Origin: Rebecca billardiae RCC1528
Taxonomy: Eukaryota > Protista > Haptophyta
Reading direction: 5' to 3'
Assembly (NCBI GenBank): GCA_965240325.2
Contig: OZ251236.1
Span: 1,426,001 to 1,490,000 of the forward strand
DNA: 64,000 bases
The notes under the pieces were generated by a model, which was not told where the DNA came from, made no database searches, and saw only the letters and a list, made by a program, of their open reading frames with translations. The position numbers and the translations under genes are program-made. Each line of letters starts with the position of its first letter. Positions within the stretch are counted from its first letter, which is position 1. Shown here one piece after another: positions 14,579-22,337 of the stretch.

Positions 14579-14953
14579 GGCGGATGCGGGCGGGCGCAAG
14601 CGTTGCGCTGCTTGAAAGGCGCCCAAGGCGGCGGCGGACGAAAAATCAAAAATGCACTACCGGGAATAACCGGGTGTAGAGTTTTCCGGCCGGTTCGGTA
14701 ATTTCAATTTATTCATCCGCGCGCTTTTTACTACGCGGCCGCGCGCTGTCATCATCCGCATTCATCGAGCGTTCGGACGAGCTTCTGCGCTCAGACTGCG
14801 CGCGCACAGCAAGTTGGCGCAAGTTATGGGGACGAAACGACACATAGGCCAGAATAATGAGCACTCACATTCTCAGCTAGCGGAGCGCTTGATGTCAACA
14901 GTTCTCGAGTCGGTGACTCCTAAGTCTGAGGACTGAGCCCTGACGAGGTGACG

Positions 14954-17221
14954 TCACCTCTCGTCGTGCTGCTCGTGCATCGATTCGTCGTGCGTGAGTG
15001 TGATCGACGGCTTGGTGGGTGCGGGCCCCACGCCGCTGTGCATCGCTGGGCTCTGCAGCCGCGTGCGCGCGCGGCTGTCTGCCGCCGAGACCGACGCGCC
15101 GTCGGCGGCGGCCGCCGCGCTCTGCACGTCGTCCTCCACGCCGTGCGCCGGCATCGGCGAGCGCGCGGGCGACGCGCCCGTGCTCGTCGACGACGAGGTG
15201 ACGACCAGCAGCGGCCGCGCGCGCCCGCGCGCCGCCGCGCTCGTGGGGGTGCCGTTCGCGTCGGCGAGCGGGGGCAGGGCACCGCCCGTGGTCGAGGGCG
15301 TGCTGTCCGCCGCGCTCGGCCGGTGCAGCCGCATCGGCGAGGAGCGCAGGTACGGCTTGCTCACGTACGGCGGCGGCTGGCTCGGCGGGCTCGGCTCCTG
15401 CGACGAGCCGGCGCGCGCCGAGTTTGCGGGCGACTGGCTGGCCGCGCGAGCCTCGCGCTCGAGCTGCTTCTGCCGCGTGGAGAGGAGGTAGCGGCGCGCG
15501 ACCATGAAGTTGGTGCGCGTCTTGGCCACCGCCTGGTCCGAGCGCCGCCGCGCGCTGCCCGCGGCGCTCGCCGAGCTCGGCGTGACGGGCGCGGGCGACA
15601 CGGGCGGGCGCAAGGCCATGGGCGACTCTGCCGAGGGCGGCGCGTCGCGCGTCGCCATCCGCGCGAGCTGCTCGTCCAGCTGGCCGGCGAGGTCCATCGC
15701 CAGCGAGCCGCCCAGCCGGTTGCCCAGGTCTTCGATCAGCGCCGAGACCGCCGCGTCCGCGCCCACCTCGATCGCCGCCTCGGACAGCCCCTCGTGCAGC
15801 GTCAGCATCTGGTCCATGTGCTCGCGCATCGTCGAGAGCTGCGAGGCGGACGCGCTCAGCTCGTCGTTCAGCTGGCTCACCGAGCCCTCGGCCACCATCG
15901 CGCGCGCCTCCCACTCGCGCGCGGCCTCTTTCTGCTGCGCGAGGTTCGTCTCGGCCTGCGCGCGCGGCGCGGCGGCACGAGCGCGCACCCGCGTCTCGAG
16001 TCAGCGTGGCGCGCGCGCGCGGGCGCGCGCGCGAGCGCGCGCGCGGGCGCGGGCGCGGCGTGCGGACGAGGCGGTCCGCATCAGGGCGCTGGCGGCACGC
16101 ACCGTGGTGAGCTCCTCGTTGAGCTGGCGCAGCGCGGCCTCCGCCTCGGCGTGCTGCTCGCGCAGCCGCGCGCTCAGCGCCGCGTTGTCCGCCTGCTTCG
16201 AGCTGAGCTGCGTGGCGAGCTTGGCCGAGAAGGCCTGCACCGCCTCTGCGTACGCCTGCAGCTGGTGCACCTCCGTCTGCATCGCCGTCAGCTGGCGGAG
16301 CTGCGAGCGGAGCGAGATGCGGCGGGAGTGGCGCACCTCCGCGTCGGGCCCGCCCGATGGTCCGCCCGCCGCCTCCACCTGCTGCAGCTGGCGCGAGAGC
16401 CCGCGCTCGACGAGCTGGATGAAGGAGTTGGTCTGCGCGGGCGACTGCGGAGGGGTCGGCTGCTTGGCGGCCGCCGCGCCGCTCTGCGCTGGCGGCGCCT
16501 CGGCGACGGGCGACAGGGGTCCGGCGGCGTCGGCGGACACGGCGTCCGCCTCCGCACTGGTCACGCTCATGCTCGCGCCCGCACCCCCGCCCTCGCCGCC
16601 GCCCGCGCCCGCAGCCGCCTTCGCAGCCGCGGCTGCCGCCTGCGCCTCGGCGCGCGCCGCGTCCGCCTTCTGCTTCTCGAGGTGCAGCGCCTCGTTCATC
16701 TGCTCGAGCACCTCGTTGCGGTGGGCGATGTGCTTGAGGTCGGCGCGCAGCCGCTCCTGCTCCGCCTCCGCCGTGCCCACCCGCTCCTGCAGCGTCTCGA
16801 TCTCCGCCTCGGCCGCCGACAGCTTGGCCGTCAGCACCTCGGTGTGCAGCCGGTAATCGTCGCACCGCTGCTTGAGCGCGCGGTTCTGCTCGATGAGCTC
16901 GCCGGCCGAGCGCTTGACGCCGGCGGCTGTTGCGCGCGTCGCGCCTGCGAGCGCGGGCAGGGCAGGCGGCGGCGAGCCGCCCGCGTGCGAGCGCAAACCG
17001 ACCGCGGTGCTCGGCGCGATGTAGAGCTCCCGGGCCGCACGCTGCGGCGCGAGCCGTTCGCGCTTGGTCGAGTCCGCGACGTATTTGCCGATCTCGAGCT
17101 GGTGCTGCACGTAGATCGAGCGCGCCTGAACCTCGCGAGGCTCGTCTGGGGCCGTTGGTGGCCGCGAAGCCGGTGTCGACGCGTTTCCAGAGCCGCGTCG
17201 CCTGAGGCTGTGCGGCTGCAT
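14954..17221 (-). CDS. Uncharacterised coiled-coil protein; exons 17221-16103 and 15955-14954
   Basis: Two same-frame ORFs rich in heptad E/L/Q/A runs, joined by a GTGCGT..GCGCAG intron that contains the in-frame stop. Confidence 0.7.
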
Positions 17222-17572
17222 GACGCTTGAGCGACGCACTGCCACCCTGCTGGCGACGAGCGACAAAAGGTGCAACCTGCAACGCTCGAAACGACGAATC
17301 TAAATAGCCGCAGCAACTACTAAACCAAGGCGTGTGGTGGACCCAATGTGGCTCAAAGACTGACAGGAGGCGAAAATAGCACAACACCGCTCTATATCTA
17401 GGTCCATGATATGATTCGGTTAGAGTATGACTATCAATATCTACCGTACCCGCTTTTGCCCGAAACGACGAACCCATGTATTAGAATCGCCAACGACATT
17501 TTATTCTTCTCAACCATCGGGAGCATCAGAGTGGCGGGCTTGTTCCGCACAGGGCGCGAGCGGGCGCGCGCG

Positions 17573-20500
17573 TCAAAGCAGGCGCGCGGCCGTGGACGCT
17601 GTGGCGCCGGCCCGCGCGCTCGGCCGCGGCAACGGGCCGATGAGCGAGAGCATGACGGGCACGAACGCCAGCCCCGCGAGCAGTCCGAGCAGGATCGCGC
17701 CCCAAACGAGCACGAAGAAGGTGCGGAACACGGGCGAGTGGCTCGCCGCGAGGAAGAGCGTGCCGAGGAGGGTCGAGCCGCCCGCGTTGAAGATCGAGAA
17801 GCCGATCGCGTCGAGCGCCTGATGCACCTTCTCCTCGCGCGTGCGCCCCGGCGCCATCACGTACGCGTGGCCGATGTGGCACGAGTAGTCGATGGCGAGC
17901 GCGAGCGCGAGCAGCAGCGACACGAGCGTGATCGTGTTGAGGGGCAGGTCCAGCAGCACCTGCGCACGGCAGGGGCGCAGGGCGTGCGCGCGCACTCAGC
18001 ACTCACTCACCACGTTCCCTCACCCGCGCACGCGCTCGGCCCGCGCCTCGCGTGCAGATCGCCGCACCATCGCGCCGAGCAGGAGCACGTCGATGCAGCC
18101 GACGGTCACTGCGCACAGCAGCGCGAGGCGCACGGGCAGGAAGAGGCAGAGGCAGCAGAAGATCGCGCCGGCGGCCTGCAGCAGATTCTTCAGCCCGAAG
18201 CGCGGCATGATGTAGTCAGCGAGCGCGAACTCGTACTTGAACGAGTACATGGCCGCGTCCACCGTCGGGCGGTACTTGTCGATCACGGCATCGAGCTTCT
18301 CATAGTTGTGCCAGGCCGCCACCAGGTTGCCGGGCATGCGCGCAGTGAGAATGAGACGGTGTGCCTGTGCATGGCGGGGATTGGGTGGGCGAGAGCGCGT
18401 GAGCATCATACTGTACCGTCAGCGCAACGCGCTGGGCTGCGGTGCGCGCGCATGGCGTGCGCGCCGGGGCGCGCGCCGGCGCGCACGCCGCACACCTCGA
18501 TCAGCCCAGGCGTGTTCCCGAGCACCACATCCTGCTCAAAGTCCTTGCCGCCCTGCACGAGGGGCACGCTGCCATCGCTGTGCGAAGCCACACCGGCCGC
18601 GCCCGAGATCGAGCGCGAGATGGCGTACTGCAGCAGCGAGACGAGGGACATGGACGCGTGCTGCGGCGCGACGGCGAGGGCTGGGCCCTCGTCCTCCTCC
18701 GCCTCGGCCGCGTCGATGTCGGCGGCGGCGGCTGTGGCAGCCGAGGCCTGCGTGCCCGCCGCCTCCACGCTCGCGCTCGAGCTGGCTTCGCGCGGTGCGG
18801 CCGCAGTCGTCAATGGGCGGCTGGCCGTCGCTGCCGGCGCAGTAGCCACGGCGGCGCTGGCGGAGTCCGCATGCTGCTCAGCCGTAGCGGGTGTTGGCGT
18901 TGGCGACGGTGCTGCAGCCTCCGCTGCCGCCTGATGCTGGTGAGCGGCCCCGCCGTGCGGCGCGCCTGCGCCCTTGCCACCGTGGGCGTGTGACCGCATC
19001 ACACGGAGCCGGCGACCAGCGCTGGCCTCTGCAGCAGAGTCCTCCACGGGCGCGGAGCCCTCTTCGCTGTCGGCACCGCCGGCGTCGGCCGCATCGACAG
19101 GCGCGTCGTCCGAGTCAGACTGAGCGGCGGCTGCGCACTTGTGCACGCCGCCGTCCTCGAGGAAGCGCTGCACGTCCTGCTTTGAGCCGAGCTGCCGCGT
19201 CTCGCCAGTCACACCGCTCACGCACTGCCTGTAGTGCGTGTACGCCTCGAGCCAGTTGGTGCGCACCGAGAAGACGAACGGCAGCGAATGCAGCTCATCG
19301 AGCATCGCGCCAATGGCCGCAACCTGCGCCGCGTCCGACACGTTGGTCTTCTGCACGACGAGCAGGTGCGCCGGGTTGCTCGAGCCCGCCCAGTACTGGT
19401 CCAGGTCGTCGACGAAGTCGAGCATCAGCGAGTGGTCCGGCAGCGTCGCGCGCATGTCCAGTCCGACGCGCAGGTGCGGGATCAGGCTGACCGCCACGCC
19501 CACCGCCGAGATCCAGCCGAGCACGACGAGCACGCGCACGGGCGTGCGCAGCAGCGTGCGCGCGTGGTGCCGCTTGAGCCAGCGCTCGACGGGCCTGGGC
19601 TTGGCACGGGGCGAGTGCAAGAAGTCGCCCGCGCCTTCCTCCACCGCGGCCGCATCCTTCGAGGCCCCTCCGACGAGCGCGGGCACGGGCGCGGGCGCGG
19701 CGCGGCGCGGCCGAAGCCGGATGCACGGCAGGCAGTCTGCGCGCCGCGCGTTGATGCGCCGCTCGTCGAGCACGATGCAGCCCGTGAAGACCGTCATCTG
19801 CAGGAAGTAAACCATGGCGATGCACAGCGCGGCGGGCGTGCAGAAGTACGCGTACGCCGGGAAATCGACCGACGCGCCCGTGAGAAACGCGCAGAAGGAG
19901 GTGAAGGACGTGACGGTGATCATCGTGCCGGCGACCCCGAGCGAGGAGCGCAGCCGCGCTGCGACAGGCTGCGAGTCGTCCGTCGCGCCGTACGCAAAGA
20001 CGATGATGATCATGTCGTCGGCAGCGACGCCGAGCAGGGTGAAGCACACGATGGGCGAGATCGGCTGCAGAGGCACGCCGAGGAGCGAGGCCAAGCCGAA
20101 GCCGGACACCATGGCCAAGCCCGTGCACACGCCGCTCACCGTGCCCAGCAGCAGCCGCGAGCGCCGGCCGTCGCACGTGGCGCCGCCGAGCGTGATGCAC
20201 ACGTAGAGCATGATGAAGAGCAGCGAGAGCGCCATCAGGTATGAATCCTGCTGCACGAATCCCTGCGCCTCCTCCTCGTTGAAGCGCGAGGACCAGTACG
20301 ACACGTGCAGCGGCTGGTCGCCCTCCGCGTTCGCGCCGTCCACCAGCGAGCGCAGCATGCGCTCAAAGGCGGCCTGCGTGCCGTCGTGGAAGGCGGGCAG
20401 GCCCTTGTCGTAGAACGCGAGGTACTGCATGGCGTGCACGCGCACAAGACCGGGCTCCTCCGCGCCGGGCAACGGCTCGACGCCGCCCAGGTCGAAGCGC

Positions 20501-21705
20501 GCCTCGTCCACTGCCTCGGAGATCGTGCGGCGCACGTGCTCGTCCGAGCGCACCGCCGATGCCGAATACGACCAGAGCTCGAGCGGCGACGAGACGACGC
20601 ACACGCGCTCGCCCATCATCGCAACGTACCGCTTGGCGCACACGTCCGCGTACGTCGCGTTCCCACCGCCAGGCAGCGGCGCGACCAGCGCGACGAGCCG
20701 CGCGTGCAGCGCGTGCAGCGCGAGCATGCTCTCGGCGGTCGCCAGGTCGCCGCCGTCCTTGCGCCTCATGATCAGGATCGACGGCTCGGGCGCAGCGCCA
20801 AACTTGTCCTCGAGCAGCGCGCGCTCGGCGGCGAGGGCGGACTGCTGCGGGATGTACAGCTTGTGCGAGTTCGTCTCGAACCGCATGAAGAAGAGGCCCT
20901 GCGCGCATGCGAGCGCCACCACCACGCCGAGCACGATCGCGGCGAGCGGCCGCGCGCTCACCGCCGAGCCCGCCGCCTCAAACACGGCGGCAACGCTCCG
21001 CTCGATCGCGTGCTGCGGCTCGCGCGCGCACGCGGACAGCCGAGCGGCAACGCTCAGCGGTGCTTGACCCGCGCCACTCGCGCTGGCTACTCGTGCCTCC
21101 TCAGTGAGCACTGGCAGGGGCGAGCTGCCGCCGCCCACCCGTGGGGCGCCGCCGTTTGTGGGAGCGGGGAGAGAGCCGTTGCCTGCCGGCCCGGCCGCGG
21201 ACGAGAGCGACGAGTCCGTCTCCTCCGTGTGCGAAGGCGTCGCGTCGCCCGGGTGGTGCGCGAACGATGCTTTCGAGATCGGGCCGAGCGCGCCCCACTC
21301 GCCGCCGATCGCCGCGCACTGCGCGCGCACGCACTCGTACATCTCGTCGCGCTCAGCCTCGCCTCCAACGAATCGGCCAAACGCATAGGCCTTTGGCTTG
21401 TCGCGCGTGGCGACGTTGAGCGCGGCGTGCGCGCCGAGGCCGAGCTTGAGCAAGCCGACGCTATCCAGCGCGAACGCGCGCACGCGCCCACCGGTGAGGA
21501 GTGACGCGCGCTGCACAAAGGCGAGGTGGCGCGTCGTCACCACCAGCAGCCCGCTGCTCACCGGGTGCAGCCGGCCGGTGCCGTCACGCAGCCGCGTGCA
21601 CGCGCGGACGGCGAGGACCGCCTCCTCCAGACCGACGCCACCGGCCACCAGCAGCGTGCGCACGTCAGAGTCATCCTGCTCCTGCGCCCCTGATCGGAAG
21701 GGCAT
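17573..21705 (-). CDS. Patched/NPC1-family sterol-sensing-domain (RND-type) membrane protein with N-terminal GRAM/PH-like domain; exons 21705-18496, 18364-18068 and 17959-17573
   Basis: SSD motif FTLLGVAADDMIII, GTMITVTSFTSFCAF, LDERR, and the C-terminal LALAIDYSCHIGHAY..IGFSIFNAGGSTLLG..SPVFRTFF..GLAFVPVMLS. An alternative in-frame ATG lies at 21786. Confidence 0.88.
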
Positions 21706-22337
21706 CGTCACGCGCGGCGCTGGAATAGCGCGTCGCGGCGCCGTGGATGGAAGCCGGTGCGGTTCCTGTTCGCGCGCGCGCTGCATTCTGGCGCCAACAC
21801 CTGGCCGGACTTTTCAGCGCGCAGACGATTTTGCGTTTCGTTCCAGACTCGGCCGGAATGGCGGGGCAGCCTCGGAGTTCCGGAGTCAAGTGATCAGTCA
21901 ACGCACGATGAGTCGATGACTCACAACAAGTTCATGATCATCGTACGTACGTACTGTCGTTAGCATACTGACTGGGCTCTGCGCACCGTTTCGGCGCGAG
22001 CCCACCGAATGATCGGAGTACGGCCTTGTCGTGAACGTGGCGGCATCCTGGACTGAGGTGACGTGCACGGTCAACCCGGCGCCATCGCGAGCCGGGCCTC
22101 ACCCGTCGGCGTCGCGGGCCGAGGCGTGAGTCACATTGATGGACGGCCCCGAAAGCCGTCCCGAGTGGTCGGTCGCAGCGCGCAGCGTGTGCGGTCAGTG
22201 CCCGCCAGCGGCCCCGTGCGCCGCGCACACCCTCGCCGCGTTGCGGCGGTGTGTGCGGCGGCGCGCGGCCAGCTGGCCGGCAGCTGCGTGCGGTGCGCTC
22301 GGCTCGAGCCAGCACCCGGCGCCAGCCGTCAACGTGC

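Follow-up and report, generated by a model that had tools for sequence, protein, structure and literature searches.

A predicted PH/GRAM-like head on a sterol-sensing-domain transporter in the haptophyte Rebecca billardiae

The DNA analysed here, referred to as the window, is a stretch of 64,000 nucleotides (nt) from Rebecca billardiae RCC1528 (assembly GCA_965240325.2, contig OZ251236.1, forward-strand positions 1,426,001 to 1,490,000); all coordinates below are positions in this window. A gene on its minus strand (17573..21705) probably represents a pavlovophyte-type transporter gene with an unusual layout: a transporter of the resistance-nodulation-division (RND) type, with 12 transmembrane (TM) helices and a sterol-sensing domain (SSD), carries a divergent, PH-fold cytosolic head on a disordered linker, and the head resembles GRAM domains more than any other group. 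What is new is the rare fusion of a PH/GRAM-like head with an SSD transporter, since both kinds of part are already known; the literature yielded no description of an SSD/Patched transporter with a GRAM or PH head. The window protein is designated P0001, its metagenomic orthologue, encoded on contig L001 (JGI 3300036591), P0002, and a transcript-derived homologue P0004. The main parts of the gene are as follows:

17573..21705, minus strand: whole gene from start to stop codon, three exons, ~1,297 codons (open reading frames (ORFs), splice sites read in the sequence, colinearity with P0004)
21301..21678, minus strand: PH/GRAM-like domain, residues 10-135, with helix 12-21, seven predicted strands within residues 30-110 and C-terminal helix 116-132 (AlphaFold2 model, fold searches, language-model features, Pfam GRAM on the orthologue)
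21022..21300, minus strand: Ala/Ser/Gly/Pro-rich linker, residues 136-228 (composition; low predicted local distance difference test score (pLDDT) at the linker start)
20875..21021, minus strand: conserved motif before the first TM helix (PQHA-I/V-ER) and TM1, residues 229-277 (family alignment, hydropathy)
19717..20244, minus strand: SSD, TM2-TM6, with the G-x-x-x-D-D motif in TM4 (GVAADD) (Pfam and PDB sequence matches; motif read from P0001)

A preliminary description of this DNA had quoted peptides with a GRAM/PH-like pattern ahead of the first TM helix, and had argued that their location in the same exon as the SSD excluded a gene-model artefact. These peptides were found in the minus-strand ORF at residues ~50-126 counted from the ATG at 21705 (nt ~21558-21328), upstream of the first hydrophobic helix (residues ~253-275), and the frame is free of stop codons from the domain to the transporter. 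Sharing an ORF is by itself weak proof, because this genome, of ~70% GC around the gene, yields junk ORFs of 860 codons. The fusion is nevertheless solid, because a colinear orthologue exists and because an alternative start codon is absent. P0002 was the only other protein with the domain in a word search restricted to the domain, and its layout is that of P0001. Both N-termini begin with Met-Pro and are 47-50% identical (64% in the core, residues 51-100), a conservation on par with that of the ectodomain. The only Met codons ahead of TM1 are M1 and M122 in P0001 and M1 in P0002, where an in-frame stop lies 12 codons upstream of M1; this leaves no plausible downstream start for the transporter, the event that would have undone the earlier claim.

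Codon composition was compared as GC content at the first, second and third codon positions (GC1/GC2/GC3). The values in the N-terminal domain (0.77/0.51/0.87) follow the coding pattern of the gene. It is very improbable that the fusion is not a real product, i.e. that domain and transporter are separate genes or that the domain is non-coding DNA in an accidentally open frame. Such a reading could draw on the abundance of long spurious ORFs in this DNA (one at 14895..17477 has 860 codons) and on the weaker periodicity of the linker in the window (0.73/0.68/0.81), but the colinear arrangement is repeated in a second genome with the protein identity given above, periodicity is clear both in the domain and in the linker of the orthologue (0.77/0.60/0.92), no other start codon precedes TM1, and the domain is predicted to fold confidently into a known fold. 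The ratio of non-synonymous to synonymous substitution rates (dN/dS) between P0001 and P0002 gives the real fusion no help: the values (0.87 in the domain, 0.74-0.80 in the ectodomains) carry no information, as the extreme GC3 bias lowers dS throughout the gene.

From genomic DNA and homologue colinearity, the locus is read as a genuine gene coding for a fusion protein. In the ORF list, a minus-strand ORF (21786..18406) and two downstream ORF pieces combine into one protein; the exons were searched, and TM helices counted, exon by exon. Exon 2 matched P0004 residues 798-891 (53% identity, E 2e-29) and exon 3 matched residues 916-1003 (78% identity, E 2e-46), and the alignment offsets on P0004 imply an exon 2/exon 3 junction without insertion or deletion. 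The gene structure is as follows:

21706..21786, minus strand: in-frame upstream ATG and 27 codons, probably non-coding 5' untranslated region (GC3 0.70; P0001 and P0002 both begin at the aligned Met-Pro)
18496..21705, minus strand: exon 1, 1,070 codons, with the N-terminal domain, linker, TM1, first ectodomain (ECD1), SSD (TM2-6), loop, TM7 and most of the second ectodomain (ECD2) (ORF, Pfam, hydropathy; identical to P0001 through its residue 1070)
18365..18495, minus strand: intron 1, GT (18495) to AG (18365), phase 0 (sequence; the P0004 alignment of exon 2 begins at residue 798)
18068..18364, minus strand: exon 2, 99 codons, end of ECD2, TM8 and TM9 (P0004 match, hydropathy)
17960..18067, minus strand: intron 2, GT (18067) to AG (17960), phase 0 (sequence; exon 2/exon 3 junction colinear with P0004)
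17573..17959, minus strand: exon 3, 128 codons and stop, TM10-12 (P0004 and NPC1 matches)

Spurious ORFs arise easily in the neighbouring DNA: both strands of 14895-17477 (75% GC) carry opposing ORFs of 760-860 codons with Arg/Ala/Gly-rich translations. A 424-codon ORF in the same region (16001-17275, minus strand) resembles a real coiled-coil protein.

The predicted structure of the N-terminal domain supports a PH-like fold well, as the preliminary description had anticipated. AlphaFold2, run on the alignment of P0001 and P0002, gave a model (pLDDT 76.5, predicted template-modelling score 0.74) with a seven-stranded antiparallel beta-sandwich (strands 30-41, 46-57, 60-65, 75-79, 83-88, 95-100 and 107-110) capped by a C-terminal alpha-helix (116-132). 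In Foldseek searches of the PDB, the first match was 4tyz, a Leishmania domain of unknown function (6.3e-5), the second was the PH-like/GRAM domain of Lam6 (5yqr, 2.3e-4), and the remaining matches were all of PH type. VIA-align gave Z-scores of 13.7 for Exo84, 13.3 for 4tyz, 12.2 for Bcr-PH, 12.0 for Lam6 and 11.0-11.3 for the GRAM domains of MTMR2 and MTMR6 (MTMR2 11.3). A VIA scan of 48,161 chains, independent of Foldseek, returned only PH-superfold domains among its top 50 (Z 10-13.7). Structural neighbours in the ESM Atlas were mostly GRAM or bacterial PH domains: GRAMD2A, an oomycete GRAM+VASt protein, TBC1D9B and bacterial PH (bPH_3) proteins, with template-modelling scores of 0.63-0.71, the value of 0.71 belonging to a cluster annotated as putative GRAM.

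Within the PH superfold, GRAM is the best single guess for the subtype, and we hold it to be somewhat likelier than not. It was the sole signal in sequence profiles (Pfam GRAM, PF02893, on P0002: E 6.6e-5), it ranked first in the language-model feature searches with both P0001 and P0002 (0.89-0.90) and in the Atlas structure search, and the N-terminal helix (12-21) is included in the alignments to Lam6, 4tyz and MTMR2, which begin at model residues 9-15, whereas those to ordinary PH domains begin at residue ~27. The domain is also basic (net charge +3, isoelectric point 9.0; orthologue +9 and 10.5). Several results weigh against the assignment. The Pfam match on P0002 scored 23.2 bits against a gathering cutoff of 23.6 and covered residues 21-60 on positions 8-42 of the 112 in the hidden Markov model; with the N-terminus of P0001, Pfam gave no GRAM or other match even at E<=10. 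The VIA Z-scores do not part GRAM from generic PH, PTB and EVH1 domains, and Exo84 and Bcr PH equal or exceed Lam6 and the MTMR GRAM domains. The AlphaFold2 model is built on an alignment of two sequences, and the domain modelled from a single sequence was poor (pLDDT 41). Thus, of the GRAM/PH-like pattern described earlier, a PH/GRAM-like fold at a presumably cytosolic N-terminus stood, and GRAM membership became borderline.

The same searches bear on a different reading of the head, as a generic PH-superfold protein-interaction module rather than a lipid sensor, comparable to the Exo84 Ral-binding, Vps36 GLUE, BBS5, TFIIH p62 and RanBD domains. Its partner would be a small GTPase, ubiquitin or a trafficking adaptor, and through this partner it would control the sorting or turnover of the transporter. 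The best VIA match is the Ral-binding PH domain of Exo84; the TFIIH p62, GLUE, RanBD, PTB and EVH1 domains all reach Z 10-12; the BBS5 and Vps36-GLUE PH clusters follow GRAM closely when ranked by language-model features (0.86-0.87); and no canonical phosphoinositide motif was verified in the head. Set against these are the profile signal, the first rank in feature and structure searches, the N-terminal helix aligned only in matches of the Lam6, 4tyz and MTMR2 type, and the basic charge, and on balance we regard such a module as rather unlikely. When the PDB was searched by sequence, neither the domain nor its orthologue nor a profile of the two matched anything beyond an antibody and coronavirus nsp1 at E ~1, which were discarded as chance matches.

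The linker (~95-110 residues) is probably disordered, and by-eye inspection of it revealed no FFAT-like motif.

The transporter half was identified with much stronger matches. Pfam SSD (PF12349) covered residues ~515-663 with E 1e-28 (100.6 bits against a cutoff of 22.3), and Pfam Patched (PF02460), a search that the preliminary description had proposed, matched the window protein with E 1e-20. The PDB sequence matches were led by NPC1L1/NPC1 (~3e-21), followed by Patched (1e-12 to 1e-14) and then by PfNCR1, yeast Ncr1 and SCAP. Exon 3 (TM10-12) matched NPC1 residues 1146-1256 (2.4e-13) and, more widely, both NPC1 repeats. By hydropathy, TM1 spans residues 253-275, the SSD 488-647 and TM7 721-745, and exons 2 and 3 hold the other helices; the protein is thus laid out as two pseudo-symmetric six-TM halves, with a large ectodomain after the first helix of each, as in RND transporters.

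Charged relay residues are present in both halves (GVAADD in TM4, an acidic residue in TM10). In exon 3, the Asp and His of A-I-D-Y-S-C-H fall on V-E-F-C-S-H of NPC1, with the Asp aligned to the NPC1 Glu. The function ascribed to such residues is the one established for Patched and NPC1. Because the TM4 D-D pair and the TM10 acidic and His residues are kept, the transporter half is probably active, as a cation-coupled mover of lipid or sterol.

The earlier naming of the transporter as NPC1/Patched was kept at the level of the SSD/RND superfamily, the protein being neither a true NPC1, as it lacks the N-terminal domain and has 12 TM helices, nor a true Patched. The best NCBIfam model was TIGR00917 (NPC1) with 134 bits against a cutoff of 1016, and TIGR00918 (Patched) gave 84.9 bits against 1120. 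Pfam found no NPC1 N-terminal domain (NPC1_N), and gave only SSD/Patched models in the 1,126-residue ORF, with no VASt/StART-like sterol-transfer domain. By homology, the protein is classed as a eukaryotic RND transporter that contains an SSD and resembles Patched in its 12-TM layout but NPC1 in its TM sequence, outside both named subfamilies.

One part of ECD2 is of uncertain coding status:

18676..19065, minus strand: in-frame, Ala/Ser/Pro/Thr-rich low-complexity insert in ECD2, residues 881-1010 (no codon periodicity)

Its composition (GC1/GC2/GC3 0.80/0.72/0.75) is intron-like, and the stretch could encode a disordered insert or else consist of at least one in-frame intron that escaped recognition. 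A comparable stretch is present in P0002. In the ECD2 of domain-less paralogues (P0003, P0004, P0005, P0006, P0009; L002 6001-9457), a Cys-rich module ending in C-x-x-T/S-C-G-x-C has a ShK-like look; the window gene has low-complexity sequence at this position and lacks the module.

Eight further relatives emerged when the stretch from TM1 to the SSD, or just the SSD, served as query: two proteins of Diacronema lutheri (KFE25_008006 and KFE25_013719), two MMETSP/EukProt transcripts, two JGI proteins, one protein of Pavlovales sp. CCMP2436 and, most distant of all (E 8e-11), the ENA metagenomic protein P0010. These relatives mark the host as a haptophyte of pavlovophyte type, and the transporter is placed, by sequence similarity, in a pavlovophyte-specific SSD subfamily. 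N-termini were inspected in seven of the eight relatives; six were short and without a beta-sandwich, and P0006 is 5'-truncated and uninformative there. P0010, covered by a Pfam scan only, had no GRAM/PH match. At the D. lutheri locus, a tblastn search with the domain found nothing similar upstream (best E 0.037, antisense inside the gene, i.e. noise).

The rarity that had been suspected for this layout was borne out: a HMMER search of 1.84 billion representative proteins with the domain profile returned P0001 and P0002 only. A scan of metagenomic DNA with the profile gave 117 pattern matches, none of which was confirmed; it also missed L001, the contig of P0002 itself, and carries little weight. 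In the tree, P0001 and P0002 form a clade (support 100/99) beside domain-less clades, from which it appears that the head was gained in the small P0001/P0002 lineage or lost elsewhere. In a MAFFT alignment, a short acidic helix in the N-termini of P0003-P0005 (D/E-x-A-I-R-A/N-A; D-x-A-I/V-R) falls under the C-terminal helix of the PH domain (window 21310-21360). This may be chance or the vestige of a domain that was lost, a faint hint that was not relied on.

In the function that we propose, the N-terminus would be cytosolic, as in Patched-type proteins, and the most likely target of the basic head would be either an adaptor protein or a membrane surface, recognised by its anionic lipid and perhaps also sterol. 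If the head acts as in GRAMD1/Lam proteins, it may position the transporter or regulate it, perhaps from the far side of a membrane contact site, and the length of the linker would allow contact with a second membrane. A physical interaction at contact sites is reported for NPC1 and Ncr1 with the GRAM proteins Gramd1b and Lam4 (PMC6753064). This interaction, together with the GRAMD1/Lam parallel, makes localisation or tethering the most economical reading. Contact-site sterol handling, which the preliminary description had suggested and which we infer purely by analogy, would be plausible.

A more specific form of this proposal is unlikely on present evidence: the protein would be a single-chain equivalent of the NPC1-Gramd1b and Ncr1-Lam4 pairs, whose head recognises a sterol-loaded or anionic membrane in trans through the ~100-residue linker and so couples an RND-type sterol pump to a tether. 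If true, it would be a natural 'Rosetta-stone' fusion, and the debated hand-off from SSD transporter to contact-site machinery would become directly testable. The long flexible linker would let the head dock either in cis or in trans, and sterol in the inner leaflet is known to regulate SSD proteins (see also PMC13634356); the head could then be an autoinhibitory or regulatory lid on the cytosolic face of the transporter, with gating by inner-leaflet lipid and no tethering, which we judge highly unlikely. A natural fusion of such a transporter with a GRAM-like head would provide independent evolutionary support for the functional link between NPC1/Ncr1 and GRAM proteins, which in animals and yeast are separate proteins (PMC6753064), and a compact test system.

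Both the cytosolic-face hand-off of sterol by NPC1/Patched-type transporters and their placement at contact sites are debated, and pavlovophytes make unusual sterols. Three points count against the importance of the fusion: it is known from two sequences only, its GRAM assignment is borderline, and PH-like heads are common on membrane proteins in general.

Among known systems, the pavlovophyte SSD subfamily is close to the window protein (47-50% identity from TM1 to the SSD, 65-72% within the SSD), and shares with it the PQHAVER motif and a near-identical TM10-12. Its members differ in having 40-110 residues before the motif, without a beta-sandwich, and most of them carry the Cys-rich ShK-like module in ECD2. 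Patched, Dispatched and PTCHD have in common with the window protein the 12-TM layout, the N-terminus (predicted to be cytosolic in the window protein), two large ectodomains and G-x-x-x-D-D in TM4, whereas the ectodomains of the window protein are not recognisably Patched-like. We know of no Patched-family protein with a PH/GRAM head, and none was found.

NPC1, NPC1L1 and yeast Ncr1 gave the best sequence matches of both TM halves (3e-21 for the SSD, 2.4e-13 for TM10-12). Unlike the window protein, which starts with a PH-like domain, NPC1 has a luminal N-terminal sterol-binding domain and an extra first TM helix, and its contact with GRAM proteins is made in trans, between two polypeptides (PMC6753064), where a single chain is predicted here.

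The GRAMD1/Aster proteins of animals and the Lam/Ltc proteins of yeast likewise consist of an N-terminal PH-GRAM-type domain, then a disordered linker and then a membrane anchor. The solved GRAM domain of Lam6 superimposes on the modelled head with a root-mean-square deviation of 3.0 over 108 residues at 18% identity (Foldseek 2.3e-4, Z 12.0), while the similarity of the head to GRAM in sequence is at or below threshold. Both systems concern sterol handling, which in the window protein is a putative role. They differ in that the GRAMD1/Lam proteins have a VASt/StART-like domain and are anchored by a single C-terminal helix, in place of which the window protein would carry a 12-TM RND transporter.

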